DNA of 63,989 nucleotides, counting the filler, from Basidiobolus meristosporus CBS 931.73 (lineage: Eukaryota; Fungi; Basidiobolomycota): NCBI GenBank assembly GCA_002104905.1. It is 3 parts of 3 records of this genome, joined end to end, with 100 filler letters (N's around TTAATTAATTAA, not from the genome) between each part and the next. Parts side by side here need not be neighbours in the genome. Positions count along the whole stretch, not along the records: positions 1 to 23,636 come from MCFE01000963.1; 2 more parts are not named here. The stretch is one strand, 5' to 3'. Under the pieces are notes generated by a model, which did no database searches, was not told the origin of the DNA, and was given only the letters and a program-made list of their open reading frames with translations. A program made the position numbers and the translations under genes. Below are positions 1 through 23,636 of the stretch, piece after piece; the stretch's first letter is position 1; each line of letters begins with the position of its first letter.

Positions 1-10
1 CATCCGATGA

Positions 11-1440: not shown

Positions 1441-2160
1441 GTTGTAAATTTCGTAATTACACCTAAATATCACCTAACTTAGTCACTTAAATCATTGCCT
1501 ACGAATCTTGGAGATATTGGAAGTGATTGGGAGAACAAGTAGATCATGTGGTTTTCACTTGATGATTCATTGAATGTAATAGCAGTATTTATACTTTTTA
1601 CTTGGTCTTGGCAAACAAGATGTGGAATATGCTTAGGAAGGTCCCAAGAATATATGAGCAAGGCTTGAGGCTGTTTGGACAACTTATCAAAATTTCATGT
1701 TCTGGGTACCTGATATTTTGGTGAAATTAATCAAAGCAATTCCCAACAAGAAATTTGGTCTGGATTTTCTAAGATTTGTAGGTAATGATTTAAGTTATCA
1801 AGTTAGGTGAATATTTGGGTGTTATTTCAAATTTTGCAACAAAGACCACATAAGCTAATTGTTCTTCCAATCATTTCCAATATTCCAAAGACTCTTACAA
1901 CAGGTTATGAGCCCCAAGTTGTCACTCTTGGCAATGTGTACTACTGCTATTTCTGGAACTTTTCCCTCTGCTGAAAAGTTCAATAGTTCTCACTAGCAAG
2001 TATGGAAGGTGAAGACAAAGATGCTGCTACAGGAACAAAGCTTTGGGGATATTTTTGTGGGGGAGGAATGCCCTCCTAAAGGTGTAGGAGAAGAAGCCTT
2101 TAAGTATCAGAAGTATAAAGCGCCTTTAACTCCATATGTCTGAATATTAAAAACAAATTC
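1441..2160 (+). mobile_element. Rearranged copia family-A 5' LTR (internal inverted LTR copy) with PBS and gag stub
   Basis: An LTR start at 1441-1510 is followed by a reverse-orientation LTR at about 1505-1840. The LTR end ...CTTACAACA at 1902 abuts PBS GGTTATGAGCCC (1903-1914), followed by a decayed gag N-terminus. Confidence 0.8.
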
Positions 2161-2247
2161 CTAAATCTACTCTATGTGTTTATTTTGCCAAGACCCTGTC
2201 AAAGTTTAAGTCTCACCTTTATATTCAATAAATCATTATGTGAAAAC

Positions 2248-5200
2248 TGTTGTAAAAATTAGTAATTCCACCTAAATATTCACCTACCTTAGTCACTTAG
2301 ATCATTACCTTCAAATCCTAGGGAATACTGACCAAACTCCTTTTCAGGATTTACTTAGAATATTTTTACCAAAGTGCCAGGTACCCCACACATGAAAATT
2401 CTCAAAGTTGTCCAAACAGCCCCAGACTTTGCACACATGTTTTTGGGACCTTCTTTAATCTATTCTACATGCTTGAAATGCAAAGACCATGTGAAAGTAT
2501 AAATACTACTTTTACATTCAATAATTCATTAAGTGAAAACAACATAATCTACTTGTTCTCCAAATCACTTCAAATATCTCTAAGACACTTACAGCAGGCT
2601 ATAAGCCCCAAGCTATCACTCTCTGCAATGTCTACTACTGCTATTACTGGAATTTTTCCCTCTGCTGAAAAGTTGGATGGATCTAACTACTAAGTGCGGA
2701 AGGTGAAGATGAAGATGCTGCTACAAGAAAGAGCCATTTGGGATATTGTTATGGGAGAAGAATGCCCTCCTAAAAACATGGGAGAGGAAGCCTTAAAGTA
2801 CCAGAAGAAAGAACAAAGTGCCTCTAATTGCATATGCCTTAATGCCAAAGACAAATTGCTAATACTTTGCTCAAGAGCAAAAACGGCAAACAGTGCCTAG
2901 AAGGCATTAGAAGACACCAAATAGTCATGCTCAGCTGTGAAGAAAATGTATCTTGGACAAAAGCTCTTTATTGCAAAGATGCTGCCAGGAGAAGAAATCA
3001 AAAATCTAATTAGCAAAATTACCCTGCTAGTGGATAAGATGGAATCTATGGGCATACCAACTGCTGATGATGATGTGATAGTAACCATCCTGAATAGCCT
3101 GACAGACAAGTCTCAGGGCCTTGTATCAGCCCTAGAGTCCAGAACTGAAGATTTGATCTTAAATTATGTATATGGAAGGCTCCTGGATGTAGAACTAAGA
3201 AAATCAAGCACCAATAAGAAGGAAGAAGTAAATACTTTAATAAGCAATGAAAACCAGAAAAGGAGATACCCAAGACCTTTCAAAGGCAATAGCAACCTGA
3301 TTTGTAACTACTGCAAAAGGAAAGGACACACATCAGACTGGTGCTTGAAAAAGTAAGATAGTTGGCAGAAAAAGCTTGAATATGGAAATGCTGCAGCAAC
3401 TGAAGATAGACTATTGGAATCTGCACTAAAGATGACCATAAACAAGGATTCCCAGATGTGGTATATTGACTCTGGAGCATCTCAGCACTTTAGACACCAA
3501 AAAGAACTTTTTGCCCAATACCAAGATATTCTAATTAAGAAGGTTTCATGGGTGACAATAGAATACTTGATGCAGTGGGAGAAGGAACCATCCAAGTGAG
3601 CCTTAGAAGCAGTAAGGGAAGCCATACACTGACCTTTAAAGAAGTACTCTATGTGCCAGAAATAGCAAAGAACCTACTATCTGTAAGCAAGGCCTCAGCA
3701 GAAGGACTCAGTTTCAGCTTTGACAGTTCTGGATGCAGGATCACTGATCAAAATGGTGCCCATATTGCTTTGGGTATCAGAGATCAGAATCTGTATAAAC
3801 TGACCTATGGTAGATCATATCTGGCAGCCAGTATAAGTGACTTGAATGAAGAAACACCAATGTCTATATAAGTTGACTTATATTCCATCATATCTGGAAG
3901 CCAATATAAGTAACTTTAATGTAGAAACACCAATCCTTTGGCACAGGAGATTTGGGCATATCAACTTAGATTATGTGCACAAAATGATCAAAGATCAGCT
4001 AATTTCCAGAGTAAAAATAGATCCCCCACCTGATTTAGAGCACTATGAATCCTGCATATATGGGAAACAAGCCAGACAACCATTCAAGAGCTCTGGGTTA
4101 ACCAAAACTAAGAAAAATTAGATCTGATTCACTCAGATCTGTGTAGACCTATGCAAAACTTATCCTTAGGCAGGATGAAGTATTTAATCACTTTTATAGA
4201 TGATTATACAAGATACATGTGAATCTACTTCATGGAAAGAAAGGAAGAAGCTCTGTCTAAGTTCAGGGAGTGTAAAGCCACAGTGGAAAGAGACACTGGT
4301 GAAGAATTCCAGAAAACATGCTCTGACAATGGTGGAGAATATACATGAAAATTCATCATCCACTTCTGCAAAACTCTGGGATAAAGCAAGAGACTACTGT
4401 ACCATACTCCACACAGCAAAATGGAGTGGCAGAACATGCAAACAGATCAATAATTGATATGGCAAGATCTATGATCCATGTTCAAAAATTGTCCTATGAT
4501 TTTTGGGTGGAATCAGTTGCCACAGCTGTATACCTTAAAAATAGGAGTTATAACAGAATACTTTGCAATTCTACTCCATTTGAAGCATGGTATGGATACT
4601 CACCAAGTGCAGAGCATCTAAGAATATTTGGGTGTGCAGCATATGCCTGTTGAAATATTATACTATTTGGTATCATTCAGCAGCTGAAAATTTACTGAAC
4701 AATTCTAGACTAGTCTTGGCCACCATAGGACTTACTTGCAGCTCCAACTTTGCCAGTTTCTTCACATCTATGATCCTATGATTATTCCCCTATAGTGAAG
4801 ATCAAATTTATACTTTTGCCAAACATTATGCACTAACCCTGAAACTGTTACAGAATGCTCCTGAATGTTAAGAAACCCTCCTCACTTAGTGTTACAGCTT
4901 TATTACTTCTACAAAGATATAAATACTGATCCTCTTTATGAGTAAACAACAGTTCAACTATTAACACTGTATCTTGATAAGTTCCCTTTATCCAAATGAC
5001 TTATTAAATTGCAACAATGCCAAGAAACTGACTGAAAATCAGTCAAAATTTGAGCCAAAAAGTGTAAAATGCATATTTTTGGGCTACTGCATTGAGAGTA
5101 AAGCATAAAGACTCTACAATACCAAGGCAACAAAGCTAATCAAGTCCAGGGATGTGTTGTTTGATGAAAATTCAAACTTTTACAAAAAATGATATCACAA

Positions 5201-7371
5201 GATGACTAAAATTTGATTGCAAGTCCACCAATAGTCAGGATTGAATCAGAGCAAAACAATGAGAGCTTTTTCACTGCAGGGGACACTACAGCCATGGTTC
5301 AGCCTGCATCAGTTCCCAGGAATATCCCAGAAGTGATCATTCCAGTATCAAATGCCCAGCAATCCTATCAGACAAAAAATAGCTTAAATTACTATATCAA
5401 TGAGGGTACAAACTTAGCCTAGGCCTATTCAGCCCATATTGATGCACCCCAGACTGTAAAAGAGGCCTAAATAGCCCTCAGACAAAGTTTTGGAGATCTG
5501 CAATGACTGAGGAATATCAGGCACCAATGGAAAATCAAGCTTGGGACTTGGTCAATTACCAATCAACCAAAAATCAATTGGATGCAGATGGGTCTTCAAG
5601 ACAAAATACAGGGCTGATGGTACAGTAGAAAGCTAAAAAGCAAGACTTGTGGCCAAAGGATACTCTCAAACAAAAGGACTTGACTACACTGAGACATTTG
5701 CACTGGTAGCCAAGTTTAATTCCATCATATTAATTTTGGCTATTGCAGCCAAATATAAGTTTTTTATCCATCAAATAGATGTAAAAGCTGCATTTTTGAA
5801 CAGGGAGCTTGCTGAGAACATGTATATGGACCAGCATAATGGGTTTGTTGACCAAGACAACCTCCATTTGGTCTGCAAGCTTATAAAGTCTCTATATGGT
5901 CTCAAACAATCACCAAGAGCCTGGAATTGCAAGATATATTCCTATTTGCAATCTTTGAGTTTCCAAAGGAGTAATGCTGACTGAAGTATATACTATAAGC
6001 AAGATAGAGCAAGTCCAGTTCTATTGGCTCTATATGTGGATGATCTTATTGTAGCCACTAATAACCTAGCAACATTGGAAGAGACTAAATCCAGCCTATC
6101 TAAGGAGTTCAAGATGTCCATTCTAGGAGAACTCAGTTACTACTTGGGGATTAAGTTCTCCATAGACAGTGGTACCCAGACTATCACCCCAAGCCAATCC
6201 AAGTATATTCAAGATATACTAAAGAAGTACCAACTGGAAGACTATAAACTGGCAGCTACCCAATGGAGACAAACCTTAGCTTGGTCAAAACTCAATCAAA
6301 TCAAGAGAGCTTGGTGTCATCTGAAAGCTCTGACTTTCCTTATCCATCTATGGTTGGCAGTCTGATGTACATCATGCTTGGAACACATCCAGATTTCTCA
6401 TATTCAGAGGGAGTTGTCAGCCAACATAATCAGAGCTATGGATCTGATCATATTGCAGCAGTTAAGTAGATAGTTAGATATCTGAAAGGAACTGCTGATA
6501 TCTGCTGAAGATACACTTAAAAAGATTCAGAACAGGATCCTGTGAGATACTCTGATGCTAATTGGGGACAAAATATGGAAGACAGCAGATCCACCACAGG
6601 ATACACCTTTCTTTACTGTAAAGGAGCAATTTCATGGAATTCAAGAAAGCAACAAGCCATAGTGCTTTCTACCACGAAGACAGAGTACATGGCAACCTGT
6701 GAAGCTACAAAAGAAGGAATGTGGCTAACAAAGCTTTTACAGATTTAGGCCTATTTTAAAAAACACCTATTACCTTATTTCAAGACAATCAAGGATGGAT
6801 ACAACTAGGTAGATATCCAACTTTTCATGCTAGAACTAAGCACATAGATATTAGACATTGTTTCATATGTGAAGCTATAGAGAATAGCTTAGTTAGCTTA
6901 GCTTACTGTCCTTCATATGAAATGATTGCAAACATATTTACCAAACCATAAGCCAGAGACAAGCTTGAATATTGTAGATCAAAATTAGGACCAGTCAGTA
7001 TGAACATTTAGCTGAGTGGGACTGTTGTAAAAAGTTTGTAATTCCGCTTAAATACTCACATAACTTAGTCACTTAGATCATTACCTTCAAATACTAGAGA
7101 ATACTGACCAAATTCCTTGTTGCAATTTACTTGGAATATTTTCATCAAATACCAGGTACCCTGAACGTGAAAATTCTCAAAGTTGTCCAAAGAGCCCCAA
7201 ACCTTGCACACATGTTCATGGGACATTCCTAAATCTATTCTATATTGTTGTTATGTCAAGACCATGTAAATGTATAAATACTACTTAGAAAATCAATAAA
7301 TAATCAAGTGAAAACCACATAATCTACTTGTCCTGCCAATCACTTCCAGAATCTCCAAGACTCTAACAACA
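2248..7371 (+). mobile_element. Near full-length degenerate Ty1/copia LTR retrotransposon, family A
   Basis: 5' LTR 2248-2596, PBS GGCTATAAGCCC, gag (EKLDGSNY; CNYCKRKGHTSDWC zinc knuckle), protease (WYIDSGASQH), integrase (DNGGE-like region, QQNGVAEHANR), RT ([25 protein letters not shown]), RNase H (YSDANW, ISWNSRKQ), purine tract and 3' LTR 7023-7371. Many stops and frameshifts; no matching TSD (AAAAC vs CATGA). Confidence 0.95.
4648..5016 (+). mobile_element. Solo LTR of copia family B inserted in the integrase of the family-A element
   Basis: TGTTG...GCAACA, 369 bp, flanked by 5-bp TSD ATGCC (4643-4647 and 5017-5021). Homologous to the LTRs of the 15682-20755 element. Confidence 0.9.
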
Positions 7372-7970
7372 CATGAAAAGCTCCTGGATGTAGAGTTAAG
7401 AAAATCAAGCACCAATAAGAAGGAAGAAGAAAAAGCTTTAATAAGTAATGATCACCAGAAAAGAAGATACCCAAGAACTTTCAAAGGCAATAGCAACCTG
7501 ACTTGTGAGTACTGCAAAAGGAAAGGACACACATCAGACCAATGCTTGAGAAAGAGAGAGTCAGCAGAAAAAGCCTGAACATAGACTATTTATATCTGCA
7601 CTAAATATGACCACAAACAAGAATTCTCAGATGTGGTATGTTGACTCTGGAGCATCTCAACACTCTACAAGCCAAAAAGAACTTTTTGCACAATATCAAG
7701 AAATTCCATTTATAAAGTTTTATGGATGGCAATAGAATACTTGATGCAGTGGGAGAAGGAACCATCCAAGTAAGCCTTAGAAGCAGTAAGGGAAGCCATA
7801 CACTGACCTTTAAAGAAGTACTCTATAAGCCAGAAATAGCAAAGAACCTACTATCTGTAAGCAAGGCCATAGCAGAAGGACTCAGTTTCAGCTTTGACAA
7901 TTCTGGATGGAGGATCACTGAACAAAATGGTGCTCATATTGCATTGGGTATCAGAGATAAGAACTTGTAT
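7372..7970 (+). mobile_element. Copia family-A gag/protease fragment
   Basis: Near-duplicate of 3173-3800 (LLDVELRK, zinc knuckle, WYVDSGASQH, PEIAKNLLSVSKA). Confidence 0.9.
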
Positions 7971-8197
7971 AAGTATTCTGTTATAACTTCAATTTTAAGG
8001 TATATAGCTATGGCAACTGAATATACCCAAAAATCATACAAAACATTTTGATCATGGATCATATATCTTGTCAAATCAGTTATTGATCTGTTTGAACATT
8101 CTGCTACTCTATTTTGCTGTGGGGAGTATGGTACAGTAGTCTCCTGCTTTAACTCATGCATTTTGCAGGAGTAGATGCAGAGTTTTGAGGTATATTC

Positions 8198-8900
8198 TGT
8201 AGTAAATGTTGTAAGAGTCTTGGAGATATTGGAAGTGATTGGGAGGACAAGTAGGTTATGTGGTTTTCACTTGATGATTCATAGAATGTAAAAGTAGTAT
8301 TTATACTTTTACCTGATCTTGGCATTACAAACACGTAGAATAGGTTAAGGAAGGTCCCAAGAACATGTGTGCAAAGTTTGGGGCTGTTTGGACAACTCTG
8401 AGAATTATCATGTTCTGGGTACCTGGTATTTTGGTGAAAATATTCTAAGTAAATCCCAAAAAGGAATTTGGTCAGTATTCTCTAGGATTTGAAGGTAATG
8501 ATCTAAGTGACTAAGCTAGGTGAATATTTAGGTGGAAATACAAATTTTTACAACAGTAAAAGTCTTGGAGATATAGGAAGTGATTGGATAGACAAGTACA
8601 TTATGTTGTTTTCACTTGATGATTTATTGAATGTAAAAGTAGTATTTATACTTTTACCTGATCTTGGCATTACAAACACGTAGAATAGATTAAGGAAGGT
8701 CTCAAGAACATGTGTGCAAAGTCTGGGGCAGTTTGGAAAACTTTGAGAATTTTCATGTTCTGGGTACCAGATATCTTGGTGAAAATATTCTAAGGAAATC
8801 CTGACAAGGAATTTGGTCAGTATTACCTAGTATTTGAAGGTAATGATCCAAGTGACTAAGTTTGGTGAATATTTAGGTGGAATCACAGATTTTTACAACA
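8198..8900 (-). mobile_element. Outer solo LTR, family A
   Basis: TGTAGTAAA...TTACAACA with 5-bp TSD TATTC (8193-8197 and 8901-8905). It is split after 9 nt by the inner LTR. Confidence 0.9.
8207..8555 (-). mobile_element. Inner solo LTR, family A, inserted into the outer LTR
   Basis: TGTTGTAAGAG...TTACAACA with 5-bp TSD GTAAA (8202-8206 and 8556-8560). Confidence 0.92.
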
Positions 8901-9500
8901 TATTCTCCACCATTGCCAGAGTGTATTTTCTTGATTTTTCCACCAGTTTCCCTCTCTACCATGGCTTTAAGCTCCCTGAGCCTAGACATAGCTTCTTCCT
9001 TTCTCTCCATGAAGTAGACTCATCTGTATCTTGCATAATCATCTTGAAAGTGCTTAAATACTTTATCCCACCTAAGGATAAATTTTGAATAGGTCTGCAC
9101 AGCTATGAGTGAATCAGATCTAATTTTCTCTTAGTTTTGACTAACCCTGAGCTCTTGAAGGGTTATCTGGCTTGTTTCCTATATATGTGGCTTCATAGTG
9201 CTCCAAATTAGGTGGGGGATCAATCTCTACTCCGGAAATTAGCTGATCTTTGATCATTTTGCGCAAATAATCAAAATTGATGTGCCCAAATCTCTTGTGC
9301 CAAAGCATTGGTTTTCTTCATTAAAGTTACTTATATTGGCTTCCGGATATGATGGAATATAAGTCAACTTGTATTGATTTGATATCTGATACCCAAAGCA
9401 GTATGGTCACCATTCTGATCAGTGATCCTTCATCCAAAATTGTCAATGCCAAAGCTGAGTCCTCCTGTGGTGGCCTTACTTACAGATAATAGGTTCTTGG

Positions 9501-12500
9501 CTATTTCTGTCTAACTGCTGCAATATGATCAGTTCCAGAGTTCTGATTATGTTGGCTGACAACTCCCACTGAATATGAGAAATCTGGATGTGTTCCAAGC
9601 ATGATGTACATCCAACTGCCAACCAAAGATTGATAAGGAAAGTCAGGGCTTTCAGATGGCACCAAGCTCTCTTGATTTGATTGAGTTTTGACCAAGCTAA
9701 GGTTTGTCTCCATTGGGTAGCTGCCAGTTTATAGTCTTCCAGTTGGTACTTCTTTAGTATATCTTGAATATACTTGGATTGGCTTGGGGTAATAGTCTGG
9801 GTACCACTGTCTATAGAGAACTTAATCCCTAAATGGTATCTGAGTTCTCCTAGATGGACATCTTGAGCTCTTTAGATAGGCTAGATTTAGTCTCTTCCAA
9901 TGTTGCTAGGTTATTGGTGACTACAATAAGATCATCCACATATAAAGCAAATAGACCTGGATTGGCTCTATCTGACATATACTATGCACTTTAGTCAGTA
10001 TTACTTCCTTTGTAACTAAAGGATTCCAGATAAGACTATATCTTGCAATTCCAGGCTTTTGGTGATTATTTGAGACCATATAGAAACTTTTTAAGCTTGC
10101 AGACCAAATGGAGGTTGTCTTGGTCAACAAACCCATCATGCTGGTCCATATATGTATCCTCATCAAGTACTCCATTCAAAGATCCAGTTTTTACATTCAT
10201 ATGAAGTATAAAAAAATTATATTTGGCTGCAATAGCCAATATCAAATCGTAGGAATTAAACTTGGCTACCAGTGCAAAGGTCTCAGTATAGTCAAGTCAT
10301 GTTGTTTGAGAGTATCCTTTGGCCTCAAGTCTTGCTTTGTTTCTTCCAATTGAACCATCAGCCTTGTATTTTGTCTTGAAGACCCATCTGCATGCATTTT
10401 ATTTTTGGTTGATTGGTAATTGACTAAGTCCCATATTTGATTTTCCATTAGGGCCTGATAATCCTCAGCCATTAAAAATCTCCAAAACTTTGTCTGAGGG
10501 CTATTTAGGGCCTCTTTTACAGTACAGGGCTCATCAATATGGACTGAATAGGCAGAGGCTAAGTTTGTACCCCTATTAATATAGTAATATGTGCTATTTC
10601 TGGTCCAGTTATATCTCCTGGAATTTGATACTGTAATGATCACTTCTGGGATATTCCTGCAAACTGATTCAGGCTGAACCATGGCAGTAGTGTCCCCTGG
10701 AGTAAGAAAGTTCTTATTGTTTTGCTCTGATTCAATCCCAACTATTGGTGGACTTGAGATCAAATTTTGGTCATCTTGTAATATATTTTTTGTAAAGGCT
10801 TGAATTTTCATCAAACAGCACATCCCTGGATTTGATTAGCTTTGTTGCTTTGGTATTGTAGAGTCTGTATGCTTTACTCTCAATGCAGTAGCCCAAAAAC
10901 ATGCATTTTACAAATTTTGGCTCAAATATTGACTGATTTCCAGGCAGTGTCATGGCAAATGCTGTACACCCAAATATTCTTGGATGCTCTGCACTTGGTC
11001 TGTATCCATATTATGCTTCAAATGGAGTAGAATCATAAAGTGTTCTGTTACAACTCCTATTTTTAAGGTATACAGGTGTGCCACTGATTCTGCTCAAAAA
11101 CTAGAGGATAATTTTTGATCATGGATTGTAAATCTTGCCACATCAATCATTGATCCATTTGCATATTCTGCCACTCCATTTTGCAGTGGGAAGTATGGTT
11201 CAGAAGTCCCTTGCTCTATCCCAGAATTTTGCAGAAGTGGACGTAGAGTTTTGAGGTATATGTTCCACCATTATTAGAGCATATTGTCTGGATTTTTTCA
11301 CCTTTGTCTCTCTCCACTATGGCTTTACACTCCCTGAACTTAGACAGAGCTTCTTCCTTTCTCTTAATAAAGTAGACCCACATGTATCTTGTATAATCAT
11401 CTATAAAAGTGATTATATACTTCATGCTGCCTAAGGATACGTTTTGCATAGGTCCACACAGATCTGAGTGAATCAGATCCAATTTTTCTTAGATATGATT
11501 AACCTAGATCTCTTGAACAGTTTCTGACTTGTTTCCCATATATGAGGGCTTCATAGTGCTCTAAATTAGGTGGGGGATCAATTTTTACTCTGGAAATTAG
11601 CTGATCTTTAATCATATTGTGCACATAATCAAAGTTGATATGCCCAATTCTCCTGTACCAAAAGAATTGATGTTTCTTCATTAAAGTTACTCATATTGGC
11701 TTCCAGATATGATGGAATACAAGTCAACTTTTATAGATTTTGATATCTAACACTCAAAGCAATATGGTCACCATTCTGATCTGTGATCCTGCATCCAGAA
11801 TTGTGATAGCTGAAACTGAGACCTTCTTCTATGGCCTTACTTACAGATAGTAGGTTCTTGGCTATTTCTAGCACATAGAGTACTTCCCTAAAGGTCTGTG
11901 TGTGACTTACTTCACTGCTTCTAAGGTTTACTTGGATGGATCCTTCTCCCCCTATATCAAGTGCTCTGTTGCCACCCATAAAACCTTTTTAATTGGCATT
12001 TCTTGATAATGGGTCAAAAGTTCTTTTGGGTATGTAAGGTGTTGAAATGCACTAGAGTCAACATACCCCGTCTGAGAATCCTTGTATGTGGTCATATTTA
12101 GTGCAGATATGAGTAGTCTATCTTCAGTTGTTGCACCATTTCCATATTCAGGCTTTTTCTGCTGACTATCTCACTGTTGGAAGAACCAGTCCAATGTATA
12201 TCATTTCCTATTGCAGTATTTGTAAAGCAGGCTGCTATTACCATCATTAGGTATTGGCTATCTTCTTTGTTGGTTATTCTTGCTTATTAAAGCTTCTTCC
12301 TCTTCCTTCTTATTGGTATTGGATTTTCTTGATTCTGCATTCAGGAGCCTTCCATATAAATAATTCAAGGTTAAATATTCATATCTGGATCTAGAGCTCT
12401 TACAAAGCCCCAAACTTGTCTGTCAAGCTATTTGGCATGGTTACTATCACATCCTCATCATTGGTTGGTACACCCACAGATTCCATCTCATCCACCGCAG

Positions 12501-13270
12501 GTAATTCTGTTAATTAGACTTTCCATTTCTTCTCCTGGCTGCATCCTTGTAGTAAAGGATTTTTGTCAAAGGTACATATTCTTGGCAGCTGAAATGACTG
12601 GTAGGTGTCTTCTAATGCCTTTCTAGCATACTTGTCCATTTTTGATCTTGAGCATTGAATTAGCAATTTGTCTTGGAAATTAAGGCAGATACAGTTGAAG
12701 GCACTATGTTCTTTCTTCTGGTACTTTAAGGACTCCTCTGCCACATATTTAGGGGGGCATTCTTCTCTCATGACAATATTCCAAATGCTGCTCTCTTGTA
12801 GCAGCATCTTCATCTTCACCTTCCACACATGATAGTGAAATCCATCCAATTTTTCAGTAGAGGGAAAACTTCCAGTAATAGCAATGGTGGACATTGCAGA
12901 GAGTGACAGTTTGGGGCTCATAGCCTGTAGCAAAAGTCTTTGAGATGTTGTAAGTGATTGGGAGGACAAGTAGATTATGTGGTTTTCACTTTATGACTTA
13001 ATGAATGTAAAAGTAGTATTTATACTTTCACATGGTTTTGGCATAAGCTCACATGGAATAGGCTTAGTATGGTCCCAAGAACATGGGTGCACAGTTTGAG
13101 GCTATTTAAACAACATCAAGAATTTACATGTTCTGGGTACCTGATATTTTGGTGAAAATATTTTAAGTAACTCCCCCAAGAAATTTGGCCAGTATCCCTA
13201 GGATTTGATGGTAATGATCTAAGTGACTAAGCTAGGTGAATATTCAGGTGCAATTACAAATTTTACAACA
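9501..13270 (-). mobile_element. 3'-truncated copia family-A element
   Basis: 5' LTR 12926-13270, PBS GGCTATGAGCCC, gag (EKLDGFHYHVWKVKMKMLL), integrase (DLIHSDLCGPM, FIDDYTRY, QNGVAE) and RT fragments to about 9501. RNase H and the 3' LTR are missing. Confidence 0.9.
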
Positions 13271-13299
13271 ATTAGAACATTTGATCCAGCTGGATTTGG

Positions 13300-15645
13300 A
13301 AACATCTGAGTAAACCTCAGAGGTAGTAAAGGATATTCAAGCTCTTACCTTCAAAGAAGTAGTGACTATCACTATGTCAACAAGAGTGCAAGCTTGGCCT
13401 ATGCCTATTCAGTCCTATTGATCAGCTCCAGAAGGTAAAATAGGCTCTAAACAGTCCTCAGACAAGGTTTTGGAAAAACTCTTTGGCTGAAGAATTACAA
13501 GGCCTGTTATAAATTCAAACATGGGACTTGGCCAAAATACCAATGCACCAAAAATCATTTGGACATAGGTAAGTGTTCAATATAAGGCTGGTGATACAAT
13601 TCAAGCATACAAAGCAAGACTTATGGCAAAAGAATACTTTCAAATGAAAGTACTGGGCTACAATGAAACCTTTGCCCAGTTGGCCTAATTAATTCTACCA
13701 GACTACAATAGGCAAGTGCAGCCAAATATAAGGTTTTTACATCTCATATGGTCCTAAAAGCTGCATTTTCAATGAGGAACCTGATCAGGATATGTACATG
13801 GACCAGCTTGATGGGTATGAGCACCAGAATAACCTCCAATTGGTCTGCAAGCTTAGTGAGTCCTTATGTGGTCATACATAAAAGCAAAGAAGGACTAAAG
13901 ATATGCATCTGGTAAGCAATACCCAACGCACTCAGTATCTAGCTCCTGAGGCTTGTAACATGTCACAAAAATGCATGGCATTCACTTACTCCACTGGTAC
14001 TATCTGGCATTATAAGTTGTTAGCATAGGTTTTAATTCTGGGCTAGTATTATATGTAGTGCCAGATAGTGCCATGCATTTTTGTGACATGTCAAAAGCCT
14101 CATGAGCTAGATTTGGAATGCTATGGGTATTGAATACCATATGCATGTCTTTTGTTGCTCTGCACTCTTACTTCCCATGAACAACATAGATTCCAAAAAA
14201 AGCTCAAAAGTAGATTTTCAAAAGCACAATAGGTGAAAAACAGGTGCTGCTTTGCATGAAGAGGAAGAAATATGTTTAACACTGTGTGGCCAAGTCCAGA
14301 TTTGCTGTGCATCTCTAACATACAATGCTAATATTTGACACTCATGGCTCAATATGGCACTGTTCAATGAAACAAGTCTTATATGTGCAGGGTTTTATTA
14401 TAGCTATCAAATACCCAAGAAACATGGCAACAGACTAGATTGAGCCTTTTTAAGGAGTTTGAGGTGCTCAACCTAGGAGAGCTCAGTTATTACTCAGGGA
14501 TAGAGCTCTCCATAGACAAGAGTACCCAGAATCTCACCCTAAGACAGTTCAAGTATATTTAAGATATACTTAAGAAGATCCAAATGGAAGACTGCACAAT
14601 GGCAGCTATCCAAATGGAGAAAAACCTTAACTTGATTAATGTTTAACCAAACAAAGAGAACTTGATATTATCTGAAAGCTGAAATTTTGCTTACCAATAC
14701 ATAGCAAGCAGTCTGATGTATAGCATGCTTTGACATGTCTAGATATCTGATATTCAGAGGGTGCTGGCAACCAGCACAGTTAATGATTTGAATCTGATTA
14801 TATTACAGCAGTTCAGCAGATTCTTTGGTATTTGAAAGTAATGATATCCTCTCAAAGTACACCTACTAAGATTCAAACAGACACTTATAAGTGACTCTAA
14901 TGCATTTTGGAACAGAACTCAGAAGACTGATCATTAACCATAGGATACACTTTTCTTTACTATAAGGAGAAATTTCATAGAATCCAAGAAAGCAACCGCT
15001 TGTAGCATTCTGTTCCACAGAGGTAGTATATATGGCAGCCTGTGAGGCTACACAAATGCAATATTGCTAAGGAAGCCTTTCAGAGACCTAGGTTTACATC
15101 AATCAGCACTTACTATACTACATCAAGATAACCAAGGATATCATTTCATTCATGAAGGCAGAGTAACAAGCTTGGTTAATTTAGCTCATTGTACTCACGA
15201 TGAAATGACTGCAAATATATTTATTAAGCCATTGGCTACAAATGCTTGCATATTGCAAATAACAACCAGGAATTGTAAATTTGAGTATTTATTTGAGCTG
15301 GAGTATTTTATAAAACTTTTAGCTGATCCTATATACTCATCTAACTTGATAACTTAGTTCATTACCTACTAATCTTCAAGAGTTTTGACCATATTCCCTA
15401 TAGGAATTTACTTCAAAAATCTTGACCTAGCATCATGTGCACAGAGCACGAAACTTTGACAAGTTGTCCATCAGCCTCAAACCTCAAACACATGATCTTG
15501 AAGCCTTCTCAAACATACTCATAGCATGCTTTACCAGTACCACACAAAAGTATGGTTACTGCTTTTACATACAGCAAACCATTAAGTGGAAATCACTTAA
15601 CTTGCTGATTTTTGGATTGCTTCCAATGTCTCCAGAGCTTGTAAA
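13300..15645 (+). mobile_element. Highly decayed copia RT/RNase H relic ending in a degenerate family-A-like LTR (about 15305-15645)
   Basis: Nucleotide similarity to 5400-6990 (RT and RNase H, e.g. LHQDNQG and ANIFIKPL). Confidence 0.75.
13898..14379. mobile_element. Truncated second copy of the foldback (palindromic) non-autonomous element
   Basis: The centre palindrome and right arm match 48880-49376 (ATTTTTGTGACATG, GGCTCAAT.TGGCACT...AACAAGTC). The left arm is truncated. Confidence 0.8.
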
Positions 15646-15681
15646 ACCAATATCAATATTTCTGGTCACCATTACAGAAGA

Positions 15682-18600
15682 TGTTGTATTTTCAGAACTA
15701 ATTTGGATATAAAGAGCTTCTCAAGTAATAGTGATAATAGTTGAACTGACTATTATCTCATAAAGAAGATCAGTAATTCTACCTTTGTAGAAGTAAAACA
15801 ACTGCAACACCAAGTAAGAAGAGCTTCTCATCACTCAGGAGCATTCTGTTACAGCTTCAGAGCTAGTACATAATGTTTGGCAATAGTGCTAATTTCATCC
15901 TTTACTCAGGGGCATAATTATAGGATCATATATCTGAAGCAAGTGGCAAAGTGAAGGCTGTAGGTTAGCTCTACAGTGACCAAGCCTACTACAGGATTGT
16001 TAGGTAAATTTTTAGCTGCTAAGTGATACCAAATGGTTTAATTTTTCAATTCTCCCCCTAAACTCAATAACTTCCCAATCCTAGTTTTTTTCTGAGATTC
16101 TCAATTGTGGCCTGGCTATTGGTTTTGTCAATATATGTCATTATCTTGTCAGTTAGGCAGTAAACTTACTCTACTTAGTTATTTCTACAGCTTCCTTCAC
16201 AAAGTGATGTTGTGAATCTATATGTCATTAGTTCTGACAAGATCAGTAAGATTCCTAGCTGGTGAAATACAACTTTGAGTATTCTTGTAAATACTGTGTT
16301 GGATTGTCCGATTTGAACCAAAGTCTTTGAATACTTTTTGTAGCCATACAGCCTCCTTTTTTGCTTGACAAGCAGAAACATACTCAGCTTCAGTTGTAGA
16401 AAGGGCAAGAGTTGGTTGTTTCTTGCAATTCCAAGTAATACCTGCACCAGCATTAAGCAATACATATCCCACTGTAGAGCATCTGGTTAATCATATCCCT
16501 ACCCCAATCTGAATTATTTAACATCAAACTGTTGCCTATAAGCTGCTCCAAAGTATTCCAGTATCACATCTATGGTACCTTGTAGATATCTGAAAATACA
16601 CTACACTGCTGGAATTTCATTTCATTCATAAATTTGCATAAATTGACTGACTATTCTACTACCACTGCAAAATTTGAACATGTAGACTCCATCAAGTACA
16701 TCAGGCTGCCAGCCACTGATTGATAGGGAAAGCTTTAGTCCATACATATAGCCTTTTGACATAAACTGGCTAAGTTTTGCTCAGTTTTGAGTTATTGTAC
16801 ATGAGGGTAGCTATGGGCTTACATTTTTCATTTTGAGGCATCTGAGAGTGTCCCTAATGTACTTAGACTGACTTGGCACAACATTTTGCACAGGTATGGA
16901 AAATACGACTTTATTTCCAAGAAAATGGCTCAACTTTCCAAGATTGTTGATCTCAAACCTGCTGAAGTGATCCAATTTTGACTGTTTAAGTGCCTCTTGG
17001 CCCTGGTAACAATTATTAGGTTGTCCACATAAAGATTTGGTAAATCTACCAGTTCCCATATTCTTGCCCTGATCAGGGATTGGTACTCCTCCTGCATGGC
17101 TTGTTGCCACATACTAGCATATAGACTTTGCATTGCCTTTGTAGATTATGAGGTTTGGCACACAAGGCAAGATAAGCTTCTTCATAATCATTGGATGTTG
17201 GTCACCAAAGATCTACAGGTATTTCTTATTCTTGTCAATCTCCTAACTCGGATAATCTGATCTGATCTGGAACTGGTAGAATAATCTTCCACATCTGGCT
17301 AAAGTAGGCATGTTTCTACTTCATTAGTGTTGATTGCATCAATCAGGGAGCTGGCCAATGATTTCAGTGTCTTTATGACCTGAACTCTCCTCAAATACAA
17401 CCTGCCTGCTCTTGATCCACTTCTGAACTTGGCTATCATTACATTCTGTAGGCTTAAGTATGCTGAAAACACTCTAGAAAGCTTCCTGTGTTACAAGTCT
17501 TGGTATAAGAGTTGCAGAGGAATAGGGAGCTTAGCTAGTATTGTATTCACTACAAACTGGAACTGCTCTTTATTGAGATTCTAGCAGCTCCTTATATACA
17601 TTTTGCCAGATCAATTGCTGACTATTGTATTTTCTAATGTAGGCTGTGGCTGATGACTCATTTGATTGCATCATCATTGCCCAATACAGATCCTGCCTAA
17701 TATATCTATTTCTGTCTGACAAGGATCTGCTGATTCATTTGCTGACTAATGTTACTGATTTGATAGATAATACTAGATGATACTGATAATCATAGACAAA
17801 TAACTAATTGATTTGACTAAAAGCTGATCTAACTTGAACATTTCAAGCAGCAGATCATAACACCTGTTCAACTCTTAGGTTCCAACCTGGAGCATTGTTT
17901 GCCAGAAATGTGATAGAAAACATCACTGCCAAAGACCCTGAGAGTGCTGGAGGTCTAGTTGTTTGCCTGTATATGCTTCAAAGGGTATAGAGCCTCATTG
18001 TTCTGTAGTTGAGCAGCTATTCTTGATATATACCATATGCAGCAACAGATTCAGCCCAAAACCTGTAGTCCAGTCCCTTATCATGTAGAGTAGACCTTCC
18101 TAATTTCTACTGGTGTTTGATTTGCAAGTTCTGCTACTCCATCTTGCCATGGAGTAATGTAGAACAGTGATCTGTTTAAGTATGCCAGTAGATGAGCACA
18201 GATTTGCAAACTCCTTTGGCAGTATTCCCCTCCATTCTCACTTTGAAGTACCTTCAACTTACACCCAGTTTAGTGTCACTGCCATGTTCTTAAAGTGCCT
18301 AAACATCTCCAAAGCTTCATCCTCTGTCTTGAGAAGTATACCAATGGATATCTTGTCTTGTCATCACTAAGCATCATATGTTACAAGTCTTGGTATCAGT
18401 GTTGTAGAGGAATATGAAGTTGAAGCTAGTACTGTATTCACTAAAACCTGAACTGATCTTTATTGAGATTCCAGCAGCTTCTTATATACATTTTGCTAGA
18501 TCAATTGCTGACTAATTGTATTTTCTAATGTAGGCTGTGGCTGATGACTCATTTGATTGCATCATCATCACCTAATAAGATCCTACTTGGTATATCTATA

Positions 18601-20755
18601 TATGTCTGATAAGGATCTGCTTGTTTCCCATATGAACAAACCCTGCAGACATGCAATTTGATTGAAATTGGGTGATTAAGGCCCAAAACTAGTTCATTTT
18701 TGCCAATTGGCTCATTTTCTGTTCCCCACTCTTTCCTTGACTCCTATGCCATGCCTTCCAGCTAGTTTCAACAGGTTCAGCAATGCTACATACTCCAGTA
18801 AAGTGATCTTGAATAGTAAGTTTTATATGTTGTGATCTCTGATTTGCAAAGCTAATTTTTGTCCATTTTTACTCAATGTTGAGCAGCTCAACTTAGTAAA
18901 AGCAAATTTCAGTCCCTGAGTAGTTGCTCTACTGACTGAGAGTAGGTTCTTAGCTATTTCCTGGTATATAAAGTAGGTCAGTCAGTTTTGCTGTTGTTGC
19001 CCCTGAGGATATCACTCTTATTTGGCTTTATAGACCCACTGGGAGTAGCTTCCAGAATAGGGTTGTCTCTCAGATAAGCTTCTCTTACAGGCATAGTCTT
19101 AAAGTTGTTAAACCGCTCCTATTTACCACAAATATGTTGTGATGCTCCAGAGTCAATATACCATTGATTACTTTAGTTACTTGGACTCTCTTGTGGAGTT
19201 ACAAATAACTGTGCATCAGCATCTATATAGTTTGCCTGCTCTAGTTTCTCTTATTTCTCTGCTTGTTTCTTCTTGCTTTCTCCTGCCCAGTGTCCTGTCT
19301 TCTAGCAGTAGCTACAGCAATCAGGTTTTCTTTGGTTTTGTTGCTTTCTCTTCTTTTTGTTGTGTCTATCTGAGCTGAATAAAGCATTATCTTCAGTTTT
19401 CTCTGCTTGATCAATACATCTAAGTTCTTCATGGTGAAGTCTTCATTTGACATGGTCTAACGATCAGACTGTCTTCTCTGCTTTCAAATCAAAGTACAAG
19501 AGGCTCATACTTGTCTAGTAAGTTGCAAAGCAGACAGAGTTCTTTTCTTCATCATCTACACCAGCATTAATGCTAAAATATTGTAGAGACATATTTGAAG
19601 TGAAATGAAGAATTAGAAGATTGGTGATGATACTCAGTTAGTTGATTTATTGAGTTGCAATGTAGTGTTTGATACTTATTTTCGGAACTATGTAAGAGTA
19701 GCAATTTACTCATTACAAGGGGAGTCTCAGGAGTACATGTGCCAAGTTTCAGCTCATTTGGACAAGTTGCAGATTTTCCTATAATTCTGTACTTCACTAA
19801 TGTTTGACAATTAGTAATATATAACAACAGTTTCTAAGTTAGTATTCTGAGATATGTCATTTAACTAAGTGCGTTCATAATATAATAATTAGTGGACTCC
19901 AATTATGTCTACAATGAATAGTGTCAAGTTCTTTGGCCAGTGTCTCCATTCTGGTAATGAGTTGTAGCATTTCATCAGCTAGCTTCTTCCTCAAGTTGAA
20001 GAACACTGGTTTGCAATAATGCTTGCTTAGTACTGACTTTGCTCTAAAGAGCATATCCAAGGATTCCCATGCTGCTTTGGCAGAATTTGAGGCATGAATT
20101 TGTCCAATAAAGGAATCTTGTACATGCTGACACTTATAGCATCAAAGGCTTTTTCTCCTTCTCTTCAAACTTCTCCACATCTTCTGTTGTTCCTTTAGGC
20201 TAGAGTTCTCTTCCTGTGACTATAGTTTGAAAGCTTTTTTTCCCAAGATGGACCTGCATCTTGATTCTCCAAAGTCTGTAGTTCTTCCCATCAAACCTCT
20301 CCTTTACAGACTAGATGTCTGTATTGTTCAGTTGGCTGGTGGATGTCAGCTTTGGAATTGATTCAAGGCATTCAGGATTCATAACCTGCTGCAATTTAAG
20401 AAGTAATTTGGACATAAGGAACTTATCAAGAAATAGTTGTAATAGTTAGGACTGTTATTCACTTATAAGGAGGCTCAGTATTTATACCTTGGTAGAAGTG
20501 ATACAACTGTGACACTAAGGTAAAGAGTGCTTCTCAACACTCAGAAATATTCTTTAACAGTTTCAGGGTGGGTATATAATGTTTGGTAATAGTGCTAATT
20601 TGATCCAACTCTAGGGGACTATCTTAGGATTATATATATGACAAAAGTGGCAAAGTTGGGGCTATATGCTAGTCCTATGGAGCCCAAGACTAGTCCAGAA
20701 TTGTTAAGTATATCTTTAGATATTGAAGGCTACCAAATAGTACAATATATCAACA
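15682..20755 (-). mobile_element. Near full-length degenerate Ty1/copia element, family B
   Basis: 5' LTR 20387-20755, PBS GGTTATGAATCC, gag (ERFDGKNYRLWRIKMQ), integrase remnants, RT, RNase H (ITWNCKKQPTLALSTTEAEYVS), PPT TAGGGGGAG and 3' LTR 15682-16051. Near-TSD GAAGA/GAGGA. Confidence 0.88.
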
Positions 20756-22550
20756 GAGGAAAGGACACACATCAAGCAGATGCTCTCAAAAGAAAGATCA
20801 TTGGCAGAAAAGCCAGAATATGGATACGCAGCAGCCATCAAAGTTAGAGTATTTGTACCTGCTTTGTGTGTGACAATAAATAATAATAAGTAGTTATGGT
20901 ATTCTAATTCTGAGGTATATCAGTACTTGTTACACCACAAAGACTTTGCCCCCAACATCAAGACATTCCAATTTTGATGGTTTTCATGTATAACTATAGA
21001 ACTCCTGATGGAGCTGGGCAAGACACTGTCCAGGCAGGCACTAGAAAAATGATGGAGGCCATATATATACCCCCAAAGGTGGACTCAAATAAACCAGAAA
21101 TAGCCAAGAACATATTATCTGTAGTGAAGGCCACAGCACTAGGACTCAATTCTCATTTTGAAAGCTCTAGATGCAGGATCACAGATGACAATTGCACTCA
21201 TGTTGCCTTAGGTAGTAGCAATCAGAGCATAGATAAGCCAAAAAAGATCCTAGCATATCTGGATGCCAGTATTGATAACTTAAGTAAAAGGCATTAAAGG
21301 GTTGTTACAGCAGAATTGGAAACATCCATTTTGATCCATTTAGTCAAATGATCAAAAACTAAGATTCCAAAGTGTAAATTGATTCCATAGCTAATTTGTA
21401 CACTGTGTGGCCCAATATAGAGGAAGCAAGCCAGGCTGGTGTCAAACTGGTCTGCACTAGTCAGAGCTACAAAGATTATATAGCCTAGATTTGAGTTGCA
21501 ATATATAACATAACATTATGCAATTATACTCCATTTTAGACTTCGCAAAGATAAGAACCAGCTGAAGCACACCCAGGATTATCTGTTTGCACAGCACATG
21601 CCAAAACTGCCACAGATTGGTCAAGACTTAGATCAAAAAGTGCAAAATTGACATTTTTAAGCCACTGCAATGCCAAACTCAAGAAATAAGGCAAGTCTGA
21701 GGATGATTTTGAATTATTGAACTATATAGTATTATACATCAGCTTAAAAGTCACTTAACTATTATGGACAAGTCTTAGTCCCTGCAGGACTCATTTACAG
21801 CCCAATATTGCCACTCTCTTTCACCTATATGGCACAATGATCATTACCATATACTCTAGATCAAATTAGAACTCTTACCAAATATTATGTATTAAGCCTG
21901 AAGCTTTTACAGAAGGCTCCTGAAAGGTGAGAAACTGTTGTCACTTAGCATTGCAGTTGCGTTACTTCTACAATGGAATCAATCTTGGCTGCTTTATAAA
22001 TAAATAACAGCTTGACTATCATCACTATTTTGCTACAGGTTCTGGATATCCAGACACTTCTTAAACTTTGTAACAATCTATGAGCCATAATTGCCACTTT
22101 CTATTCTAAGTATGACTGCTACCAGCAAACAGAGCAACACAAACATCTTTGCTGCAAGGGAGAGGTATGATGCAAGAGCTAAAGACTTTGGAGAATCCAC
22201 AAGTATACTCAACATGTGGAAAGAAAGCTTTGAAATACAGTAACAGGAAAAAAAATTGAACCCAAAGGAACAGCAGAAAAAGTTGAGAAGTTGCAAGAAA
22301 AGCCTATAGTAGCATATACCAAATGTGAAAGATTCATTCATTGAGCAACCTTGTGCATTCAATGCTGCTAAAGCTGTATATGAATGTATAAAGAAGATCT
22401 TTAGTGCAGAGTCAACATTATGCAAGCTTCATTTAAAAAAAAGGTTTGTCAACATGAAGAAGAAGCCAGTGTATGACATCAACATAAATGATGAAAAGAA
22501 AAAGTATCAGCAAGAGCAAAGTTCCTGGTTGCAGTTGCAGTTGCTATGAG
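20756..22550 (+). mobile_element. Scrambled copia relics (protease/GAG-pre piece, family-B LTR remnant about 21780-22075, gag stub)
   Basis: KPEIAKNILSVVKA motif, similarity to the family-B LTR, and a gag-like start at about 22150. Confidence 0.65.
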
Positions 22551-22848
22551 GGGAGAAGAGGAGACTGAGAGGATGGCTGGTAGGAAGCAGCATCTTGCCA
22601 ATATATAGAAGTCCCCATAGGTCTCAGCCTGAGTCTATGATAGGATATAACAAGTCAGGAGTGATGGCAAGATAGTCCATCAGTTGTTGGCAAGCATGCA
22701 ACTGATTTGATCATACTCATCACCAGTGTAACCCATGCTGAGCACAATCACCTCAGAATGAGTGGTTGAGAATCTCCAGCAATAATGCCATCAGGCTGGC
22801 TGCAATCAGTGACCATCCAAGTCACACCTCTGTCAGATTCCTTGAAGA

Positions 22849-22922
22849 TATAGCCATAGTCTAGTGGTTAAGGCTGGGCAGGGCACTCATCAGGCCCAGG
22901 GATCAATACCCACCTGATGCTA
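22849..22922 (+). pseudogene. Degenerate tRNA-derived sequence (pseudogene or SINE-like head)
   Basis: A-box/D-arm TAGTCTAGTGGTTAAGGC and a decayed B-box GGGATCAATACCC. The anticodon and acceptor stems do not pair. Confidence 0.3.
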
Positions 22923-23012
22923 ATAGCTGAAAATACATGGGAGGGGATAATCAGTGGTTTTAATTTTTTTTTCAAATATTTTGCCAGTCACCCTTAAATA
23001 TGCACTGACTTG

Positions 23013-23137
23013 AGCTGACCCTAAGCAGGGAGACTTTTAGCTGACCCTAAGCAGGGACTTTTTTAGCTGACCCTAAGCAGGGACTTTTTTAGCTGACCTA
23101 AGCAGGGACTTTTTTAGCTGACCCTAAGCAGGGACTT
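23013..23137. repeat. Tandem repeat, about 5 x 26 bp (AGCTGACCCTAAGCAGGGACTTTTTT)
   Basis: Units start at 23013, 23039, 23065, 23091 (1-nt deletion) and 23116 (partial). There are no spacers. Confidence 0.95.
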
Positions 23138-23262
23138 GTTCCTTGATTAAACAGCCTTTTAAGAGCTAGTAGGTTTGAAATGTGTTTATTCAAAAATATC
23201 TTACTATGCCAAAACTTTCACACTGCTCAAAAAGTATATGTATCTGCTTTTGAGAGCCCAGC

Positions 23263-23595
23263 CTAGCAGCAGTCATCACAGCAGTCATCATAGCAGTCAT
23301 CATAGCAGTCATCATAGCAATCATCATAGTAGTCATCTTCACAGCAGTCATCATAATCATCATCATAGCAGTCATCATAGTCATCATCACAGCAGCAATC
23401 ATCTTCCCAGTCATCATAGCAATCATCATCATAATCATCACAGCAATCATCACCATATCCATAGGAGTTGTACCATCTCTTCTGGAGTGCACTTCCAGTG
23501 GTAGCTACCTCCACCTGGGGTAAAGCCAAGCTGGTCTTCAGGAGGAGAACACTGACCATGGCCACAAGGGAGGCTCTGCTTAGAAGGGATCTCAT
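23263..23595 (-). CDS. Small secreted prepro-peptide with an Asp/Cys/Tyr-rich 70-aa mature region
   Basis: Intact 110-aa ORF with a hydrophobic signal (…LLLKTSLA-LP), a short propeptide ending in KR (Kex2-type site) and DDCY/DDCC repeats. AATAAA lies on the minus strand at 23185-23190. Confidence 0.85.
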   Translation of the reverse strand: MRSLLSRASLVAMVSVLLLKTSLALPQVEVATTGSALQKRWYNSYGYGDDCCDDYDDDCYDDWEDDCCCDDDYDDCYDDDYDDCCEDDYYDDCYDDCYDDCYDDCCDDCC

Positions 23596-23636
23596 AGTGA
23601 AAGGTGGTGGACTGAGTGTGGCAAAAGAGAAGGATC

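Follow-up and report, generated by a model that had tools for sequence, protein, structure and literature searches.

The Peptide Gene and Its Predicted Product

The stretch analyzed here (the window: 63,989 nucleotides (nt), filler included, joined from three records of the Basidiobolus meristosporus CBS 931.73 assembly GCA_002104905.1) begins with contig MCFE01000963.1 (positions 1 to 23,636), close to whose right end we found a single-exon open reading frame (ORF) of 110 codons, running from ATG to TAG on the minus strand (23595..23263). The N-terminus of its product is signal-like, with an n-region containing two Arg residues (MRSLLSR), a 12-residue hydrophobic core of mean Kyte-Doolittle hydropathy 2.5-2.7 and the triplet SLA before LP. 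The tetrapeptide LQKR follows at residues 37-40 of 110 (KR at 39-40), preceded by PQVEVATTGSA. It agrees in kind and place with the canonical KR/RR or LxxR motif that fungal proteins with a Kex2-processed pro-domain (K2PP) carry within their N-terminal half, behind a disordered segment (PMC8528282). As Kex2 prefers Leu at P4, Lys at P2 and Arg at P1 (PMC8528282), and LQKR matches at all three positions, we take it to be a Kex2-type site; both the signal peptide and the cleavages are predictions from simple rules.

Beyond the dibasic site lies a tail of 70 amino acids (aa), which would be the mature peptide and which consists of 33 Asp, 16 Cys, 13 Tyr, two Trp, two Gly, two Glu, one Asn and one Ser, so that Asp, Cys and Tyr make up 88.6% of it (Asp 47%, Cys 23% and Tyr 19%; Tyr and Trp together 21%) and Lys, Arg and His are absent. 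It opens with WYNSYGYG and continues as about 15 units of the form (DD/DDD)+(CC/CY/YY/Y), with four CC and one CCC clusters, encoded by the 12-nt repeat GAT GAC TGC TAT. The 70-mer has a mass of 8.5 kDa, a calculated net charge of about -35 at pH 7 and no N-glycosylation sequon. In the ESM Atlas, the model for exactly this sequence shows no confident fold (predicted local distance difference test score, pLDDT, 0.43; predicted template modeling score, pTM, 0.09), and the mature peptide is probably disordered according to that model. Translation and residue counts bear out an earlier note on this DNA, made from the sequence alone, as to the 110-aa ORF, the KR and the 70-aa tail with its Asp, Cys and Tyr counts and no basic residue; the signal, propeptide and Kex2 KR architecture that it described is supported by the n-region, the hydrophobic core and LQKR, and the poly(A) signal that it placed about 70 nt after the stop is an AATAAA at 72 nt.

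A Head-to-Tail Array of Near-Identical Genes

The identical 110-aa product is encoded on two contigs of the assembly, MCFE01000963.1 (23,636 bp) and MCFE01000819.1 (33,515 bp). On the latter, part of which we call L001 (numbered 1-13572), there are four calls of the gene, exactly 1,059 bp apart, and 62 nt of contig remain past the fourth stop codon. These four units, each a 333-nt coding sequence (CDS) with a 726-nt spacer, lie head-to-tail and are 100% identical in DNA over the 1,059 bp. At its left edge, the array begins with a truncated unit, which sets in within the CDS and is fused in frame to a broken copia integrase ORF (L001 8699..9274); the resulting chimera of 191 aa has rve and SH3-like domains followed by the last 45 tail codons, the first of which past the junction encodes Ala in place of the Asp of the intact copies. 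The right edge lies in the window, as one full gene, its full spacer and part of a further unit, namely its 5' region. Collinear alignment to the units of MCFE01000819.1 places the end of this further unit at window position 22504, 45 nt short of the expected ATG. The window's own gene copy retains only 41 nt of leader before the edge of the piece at 23636, and its promoter lies past that edge.

Relative to the inner units, the window unit shows one synonymous CDS change (CTC/CTT, Leu), four spacer substitutions and another copy number of a 26-nt repeat (about five, or 4.8, copies vs. two in the inner units). The ORF is intact in all five complete copies, and the sole CDS difference among them is synonymous. 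A diverged edge unit next to homogenized inner units is the expected outcome of concerted evolution, and the identity of the four units could come in part from consensus polishing of a collapsed repeat; PacBio was used to sequence CBS 931.73 (PMC7466969). In a public run that is probably the source sample (X1), a circularized contig of 1,062 nt joins position 23636 back to 22504, which confirms the tandem junction apart from the scaffolding of the deposited assembly. Both contigs end within the array, indicating that the assembler was unable to span it. A minimum of five complete units plus a truncated one can be counted, and, given the break in the assembly, the array is probably longer. The gap adjacent to the gene, which the earlier note proposed to close in search of paralogs and oxidases, is the array itself, and the flanks hold no oxidase.

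Coherent Gene Structure in a Tandem Repeat Unit

Three of the six frames stay open across the tail of 12-nt repeats, and the open tail alone is therefore no evidence of coding. We accordingly generated 20,000 dinucleotide-preserving shuffles of the non-repetitive 444 nt upstream of the tail. An in-frame ATG ORF arose in 7.4% of them and an ORF that also had a signal-like N-terminus by crude criteria in 0.03%, and none of the 20,000 added a dibasic site before the tail. In the complete units, moreover, TATATAT stands at -148, the stretch from -133 to -1 is free of ATG, position -3 is A, and AATAAA follows the stop at +72. Given these shuffles together with the TATA-like box, the ATG-free leader, the A at -3, the AATAAA and LQKR, we conclude that the gene structure of the unit is coherent and goes far beyond what chance would give; a non-coding satellite would be expected to lack such a structure. 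An upstream in-frame ATG, which would extend the ORF to 163 codons and is open in the array units, was rejected as the start of the product, since it lies just upstream of the TATA-like box, is likely outside the transcript and would bury the signal peptide.

Third-position variation between T and C in the tail was considered as a sign of purifying selection and rejected as such. Codons ending in C stand only before T and never before G, a pattern of CpG avoidance and not of free synonymous drift. However, this avoidance is achieved via codons ending in T, A or G only, and the alternative CpA outcome, which would turn Asp into Asn, is seen in none of the 35 acidic codons. The lack of Asp-to-Asn outcomes fits a protein-level constraint, although as an argument drawn from codons it is a weak one.

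Searches for Relatives

HMMER searches against 1.84 billion representative proteins gave no match at E <= 0.001. In a phmmer control, the protein recovered itself at 4e-62 and, at 3e-24, a version that carried mutations at 50% of the prepro positions and a shuffled tail, and a look-alike sharing only the tail was borderline at 1e-3; thus, the HMMER search would catch even a relative changed as much as that version. Pfam offered no family at E <= 0.1, metallothioneins included, metagenome contigs held no homolog, and no paper in the literature named either the peptide motifs or the accession of the assembly. A collection of 15 billion proteins lacks the exact protein, which is why no search returned the protein itself. 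Comparison by features in the ESM Atlas gave no relative, and the Atlas structure matches are meaningless at a model pTM of 0.09. A PDB match to viperin (E = 0.003) was discarded as spurious.

A word-index search produced one composition-level match, P0001 (E = 0.95; L005 140-529, JAZHCH010802743.1, GCA_044344285.1), a protein of 129 aa that has a single hydrophobic segment and ends in an acidic tail of the Trp/Tyr/Cys kind, ...DWYDDDCYDDYYGYED. We rejected it as a relative: it is a compositional look-alike encoded beside a Legionella-type Lcl_C gene on a 2-kb contig of seemingly bacterial DNA.

Rfam found nothing at gathering score in the stretch. Seven sub-threshold matches to C/D-box small nucleolar RNAs (snoRNAs) fall on the Asp-codon repeat at window 23220-23421 on the minus strand; we do not take them for snoRNA genes, as they are caused by TGATGA, a C-box look-alike, in the Asp codons.

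Proposed Processing and Function

The explanation that we favor, while giving it slightly less than an even chance, is a lineage-restricted B. meristosporus gene, amplified head-to-tail in 1,059-bp units, that encodes a secreted, Kex2-processed polyanion serving as a bulk cation binder. Its parts differ in strength. That the units are real, expressed genes for a secreted peptide is, judging from their architecture, fairly likely; that binding of cations or metals outside the cell is the main function is a tentative analogy, with the chances leaning against it.

Under this explanation, each unit would act as a self-contained gene, in which a TATA-like box and a leader of about 100 nt, free of upstream ATGs, precede a single-exon ORF and a poly(A) signal follows it. 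The product would enter the endoplasmic reticulum co-translationally, lose a signal peptide of about 24 residues by cleavage near Ala24, and then have its 16-residue propeptide removed by a kexin-type convertase after Arg40 of LQKR. What would be exported is a disordered 70-mer of the form (Asp-Asp-X-X)n, where X is Cys or Tyr, presumably made in bulk. With 47% Asp and no positive charge, such a 70-mer would have to bind cations: its carboxylates are predicted to take up Ca2+ and other divalent ions, and the thiols set between them, as in phytochelatins, could serve as ligands for Cu, Zn, Cd and other soft metals. The binding capacity might then be set by gene dosage, as in the CUP1 array of yeast. 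We rank cation or metal binding as the leading function because of the Asp charge, the phytochelatin-like spacing of Cys and the CUP1-like amplification. Sulfation of Tyr in the DY motifs was set aside, as we know of no fungal tyrosylprotein sulfotransferase.

CpG Loss, Counterevidence and Rival Explanations

Across window 1-23636 and L001 1-13572, the observed/expected ratio (o/e) of CpG is bimodal, at 0.8-1.0 in genic DNA (window 1-1000 and the Kre9, endosulfine, glyoxalase and carrier genes of L001) vs. 0-0.15 in copia-rich DNA, and it switches between these states within about 1 kb (window 1000-2000; L001 5000-6000). Where CpG is depleted, TpG and CpA are raised and GpC is normal, so the loss is specific to CpG. 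Such loss is the general expectation from deamination of 5-methylcytosine (5mC) in methylated repeats (PMC13297926). Accordingly, the sequence suggests that cytosines in CpG have long been methylated, specifically, in the repeat compartment of this Zoopagomycota genome.

Several observations weigh against our preferred explanation. One of these is that the array unit belongs to the depleted state. About 50 CpG are expected per unit at its GC content of 44%, and it has none, even in the prepro region, where GC is 54%; in this it resembles the flanking copia DNA, and ordinary genes 5-10 kb away have an o/e of 0.8-1.0. Because it shares the zero CpG of the copia DNA and not the state of ordinary genes, the array appears to have evolved like repeat DNA targeted by 5mC and not like a normal gene, and it may be silent. 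A CpG-free 12-mer that expanded recently could have produced the tail; such an origin would also explain the missing CpA outcomes and so weakens the codon argument given above. Asp and Tyr codons mostly end in T, and the GC content at third codon positions (GC3) is 0.39 in the tail vs. 0.66-0.77 in neighboring genes, which is not the pattern of a codon-optimized bulk product. No RNA run was found to contain the stretch, and the searches yielded no homolog against which conservation could be gauged. The chemistry and the processing raise further doubts: cysteines of secreted proteins are usually oxidized, and metallothioneins are cytosolic and poor in aromatic residues, while this peptide has 19% Tyr. 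A survey of subtilases in six Entomophthoromycotina lists S8B kexins only for Conidiobolus incongruus and not for B. meristosporus (PMC6169396).

Much of this could be said of a satellite repeat in transposon-rich, methylated heterochromatin, whose untranslated ORF would be a former gene that was silenced and is now dead, or else a gene-like accident taken up by an annotation pipeline, and we consider this rather improbable. The identical head-to-tail units that broke the assembly, the copia remnants at both array edges and the zero CpG shared with the transposon compartment, as expected of tandem-repeat DNA, suit such a repeat, as do the 12-nt-repeat tail open in three frames, the codon use that differs from neighboring genes and the fact that neither an RNA run with the stretch nor a homolog nor a paper on it turned up. 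However, a satellite does not account for gene features that stand in the right order and frame far beyond chance (three of them together in 0/20,000 shuffles, with the TATA-like box, ATG-free leader, A at -3 and AATAAA in addition), nor for an ORF intact in 5/5 complete copies whose only CDS difference is synonymous. Moreover, a unit without any CpG is no longer a target of CpG methylation, so that silencing directed at CpG could not act on it now. The product might alternatively be a structural material, a polyanion cross-linked by disulfides and by dityrosine or 3,4-dihydroxyphenylalanine (DOPA) and bridged by Ca2+, in the wall of the spore or zygospore or in the adhesive droplet of the capilliconidium; this we judge distinctly improbable. 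The 16 Cys and 13 Tyr within 70 residues, the aromatic and Gly-rich WYNSYGYG and a tandem amplification that suggests demand for large amounts of product are all consistent with it. Basidiobolus capilliconidia stick to arthropod carriers, and in marine adhesives, too, proteins that are polyanions go together with the chemistry of Tyr and Cys. The family is characterized by adhesive capilliconidia (PMC13370150). Nevertheless, no known fungal wall or adhesive protein has such a composition, the peptide is without a Ser/Thr-rich glycosylation region, a glycosylphosphatidylinositol signal or a PIR repeat, and no oxidase gene lies nearby.

The third alternative is very improbable: a precursor of a ribosomally synthesized and post-translationally modified peptide (RiPP), the D/C/Y tail of which would be the substrate of enzymes that cross-link Tyr and Cys oxidatively, as in the Kex2-dependent fungal RiPPs. 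In its favor are the signal peptide, the Kex2-type site and a core rich in Tyr, and class 1 Kex2 substrates include RiPP precursors (PMC8528282). Yet there is one KR only, without repeated KR-flanked cores, and a core of 70 residues with a charge of -35 is unlike known fungal RiPP cores. Outside the array interior, the 10 kb upstream and 22 kb downstream of the array consist of copia fragments and housekeeping genes, with no oxidase, tyrosinase, UstYa/DUF3328, methyltransferase or other tailoring gene. The RiPP-like idea of the earlier note has lost ground with the single KR and these flanks free of an oxidase or partner gene. Its statement that the peptide belongs to no named family agrees with the blank Pfam and HMMER searches. 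It would have abandoned its reading if neither a transcript or peptide nor a homolog keeping signal, KR and composition turned up, and, on the side of the homolog, none was found. In its interpretation as a whole, the architecture stands, and the two most informative facts, the tandem amplification and the CpG-free, transposon-type DNA, were missed.

Returning to the secreted polyanion, a bolder form of the proposal, which we hold to be rather unlikely, would have the array as an active dosage device for (Asp-Asp-Cys/Tyr-Cys/Tyr)n, a ribosomal counterpart of the phytochelatins or of animal biomineral matrix proteins. The peptide would then stand for an extracellular class, metal- or calcium-binding or self-cross-linking, undescribed in fungi; its gene would have been born de novo from a 12-nt repeat within methylated repeat DNA, and its complete loss of CpG would amount to an escape from CpG-directed silencing. 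We know of no earlier fungal example of a secreted, gene-encoded, hyperacidic Cys/Tyr polyanion, and Basidiobolus lives in vertebrate guts and occasionally infects people. If expressed, the gene would provide such an example, together with CUP1-like amplification in an early-diverging fungus, and a handle on the extracellular handling of metals and calcium by Basidiobolus or on the make-up of its spore wall or adhesive. It also offers a test case for the birth of genes from short repeats within silenced repeat DNA and for complete CpG loss as a means of freeing a repeat from control by cytosine methylation. Having no Lys or Arg and an extreme charge, the mature peptide would be missed by tryptic proteomics, and RNA-seq pipelines that drop multi-mapping reads would under-count the array gene.

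Annotated Features, Flanking DNA and Spacer Elements

Table 1. Features of the terminal array unit, in window coordinates.
Feature	Position	Strand	Basis or remark
CDS, 110 codons + TAG	23263..23595	-	identical product in four further gene calls on MCFE01000819.1
Predicted signal peptide, residues 1-24, Ser/Ala at -3/-1	23524..23595	-	hydropathy, rarity in shuffles; cleavage site inferred
Predicted propeptide, residues 25-40, ends LQKR	23476..23523	-	predicted Kex2-type P4-P1 motif
Predicted mature 70-aa peptide	23266..23475	-	composition, repeat pattern, predicted processing
AATAAA poly(A) signal	23185..23190	-	begins 72 nt 3' of the stop
Terminal array unit: one full gene, whole spacer, 5' region of the next unit	22504..23636	-	alignment to MCFE01000819.1, X1 contig
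TATATAT of the truncated next unit	22601..22607	-	148 nt upstream of the ATG in complete units
26-nt tandem repeat (imperfect hairpin + T6 on the plus strand)	23013..23137	+	4.8 copies here, two in inner units
tRNA-like stretch, A-box-like and B-box-like motifs read by eye	22853..22925	+	antisense to the gene, once per unit

Both edges of the array adjoin copia remnants. On the window side, these belong to a nest of at least five degenerate Ty1/copia copies (2246-22077) in both orientations, with gag, Pol_BBD, gag_pre-integrase, protease, rve and RVT_2 domains and with all frames broken, which are 66-93% identical to one another and to the copy at L001 6754-9137. A 345-bp direct repeat at window 8211-8900, whose two copies are 90% alike, has matches at L001 6754-7105 and at several window sites and is therefore probably long terminal repeat (LTR) material of copia. 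The array unit itself is not a copia LTR, as the copia copies show no similarity to it. Between the array edge and the nearest copia fragment lie 430 bp (22078-22503) that match nothing else in the window or L001; an ORF at 22325-22549 looked gag-like by eye, and was dropped as a copia gag for want of support from Pfam and BLAST. At the far end of the contig, positions 1-523 on the plus strand are the last coding exon of a gene (GC 61%, GC3 0.77, CpG o/e 0.89) encoding a Ser/Pro-rich product that ends ...SEPEAH and has no Pfam match. On MCFE01000819.1, the array is preceded by genes for a Kre9_KNH protein, an endosulfine, a glyoxalase I (ORX78564.1, Basidiobolus meristosporus CBS 931.73) and a mitochondrial carrier, and then by a 3'-truncated copia.

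The spacer contains two further elements, the 26-nt repeat and the tRNA-like stretch (Table 1). The latter was rejected as a tRNA, since neither ARAGORN nor Rfam matched it and its fold is no better than that of shuffles (z = -0.9). In runs of another strain under the same species label (X5-X7), a 245-nt contig with a word depth of about 600-700 links the tRNA-like stretch and the 26-nt units; this high-depth link suggests that the two are a repeat of the RNA polymerase III type, similar to a short interspersed nuclear element (SINE), abundant in that strain. The same runs hold short contigs 90-95% alike to the D/C/Y repeat (window 23275-23364) at a depth of 1,200-1,300 vs. about 5-10 for other contigs, and one low-depth contig of 314 nt with an in-frame insertion of 3 nt in the tail. 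The X5-X7 contigs cover only two short repeats of the unit, at 90-95% likeness; the prepro region and most of the spacer were not seen in them, and contigs of this kind cannot establish absence.

Comparison with Known Systems

The closest parallels in architecture are the K2PP proteins of fungi, small, secreted and Cys-rich (the class of SnTox3, ToxA and SIX1/4/6; PMC8528282), with which the peptide shares a signal peptide (recognized here by the hydropathy rule, under which 0.03% of shuffles are signal-like), a short disordered propeptide, a dibasic site with an aliphatic P4 residue, a Cys-rich mature part, orphan status and a place in transposon-rich DNA. Unlike the disulfide-stabilized folded domains of K2PP proteins, however, the mature part here is a low-complexity polyanion with no predicted fold. 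K2PP proteins come from plant pathogens, whereas this peptide comes from a saprobe and opportunist of the vertebrate gut; its gene has undergone tandem amplification, and the sequences show no similarity.

With regard to the array, the precedent is CUP1 of S. cerevisiae, a tandem amplification of a gene for a small Cys-rich metal-binding protein (PMC4232551). Both arrays are made of near-identical short units of about 1-2 kb in head-to-tail order, each with one small Cys-rich gene under its own promoter. In contrast to the array described here, which lies in CpG-depleted transposon DNA, encodes a product with a predicted signal peptide and shows no sequence similarity to CUP1, the CUP1 product is a cytosolic protein that lacks a signal peptide, a high Asp content and Tyr. 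More generally, the 23% Cys and the CC clusters of our peptide are in keeping with a metallothionein, but its 21% aromatic residues and secretion signal are not, and it matches no metallothionein profile.

Phytochelatins, (gamma-Glu-Cys)n-Gly, similarly alternate carboxylates and thiols on a short chain suited to Cd, Cu, Zn and As. They are made enzymatically from glutathione, remain intracellular and lack Tyr, whereas the peptide would be ribosomal and, by prediction, secreted. A resemblance of another kind is to the hyperacidic matrix proteins of animal biominerals, such as Aspein/Asprich and Prismalin-14, the last of which has Gly/Tyr-rich and Asp-rich parts. As in the Aspein/Asprich type, a signal peptide precedes a disordered chain of which about half or more is Asp, with aromatic and Gly-rich stretches beside the Asp runs. 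Nevertheless, those proteins belong to calcifying animal tissues, have no regular Cys and are not homologous to the peptide, and we know of no mineralized structure in Basidiobolus. Finally, the dikaritin-type RiPP precursors (ustiloxin and phomopsin) share a signal peptide, Kex2 dependence and Tyr-containing cores with the peptide, but they feature many short KR-flanked cores and are encoded beside UstYa/DUF3328 or tyrosinase genes, in place of the one KR and the absence of such neighbors seen here. Taken together, the peptide belongs to no named family and is kin in kind to the orphan small secreted Cys-rich proteins, on the one hand, and to adaptive tandem gene arrays, on the other.

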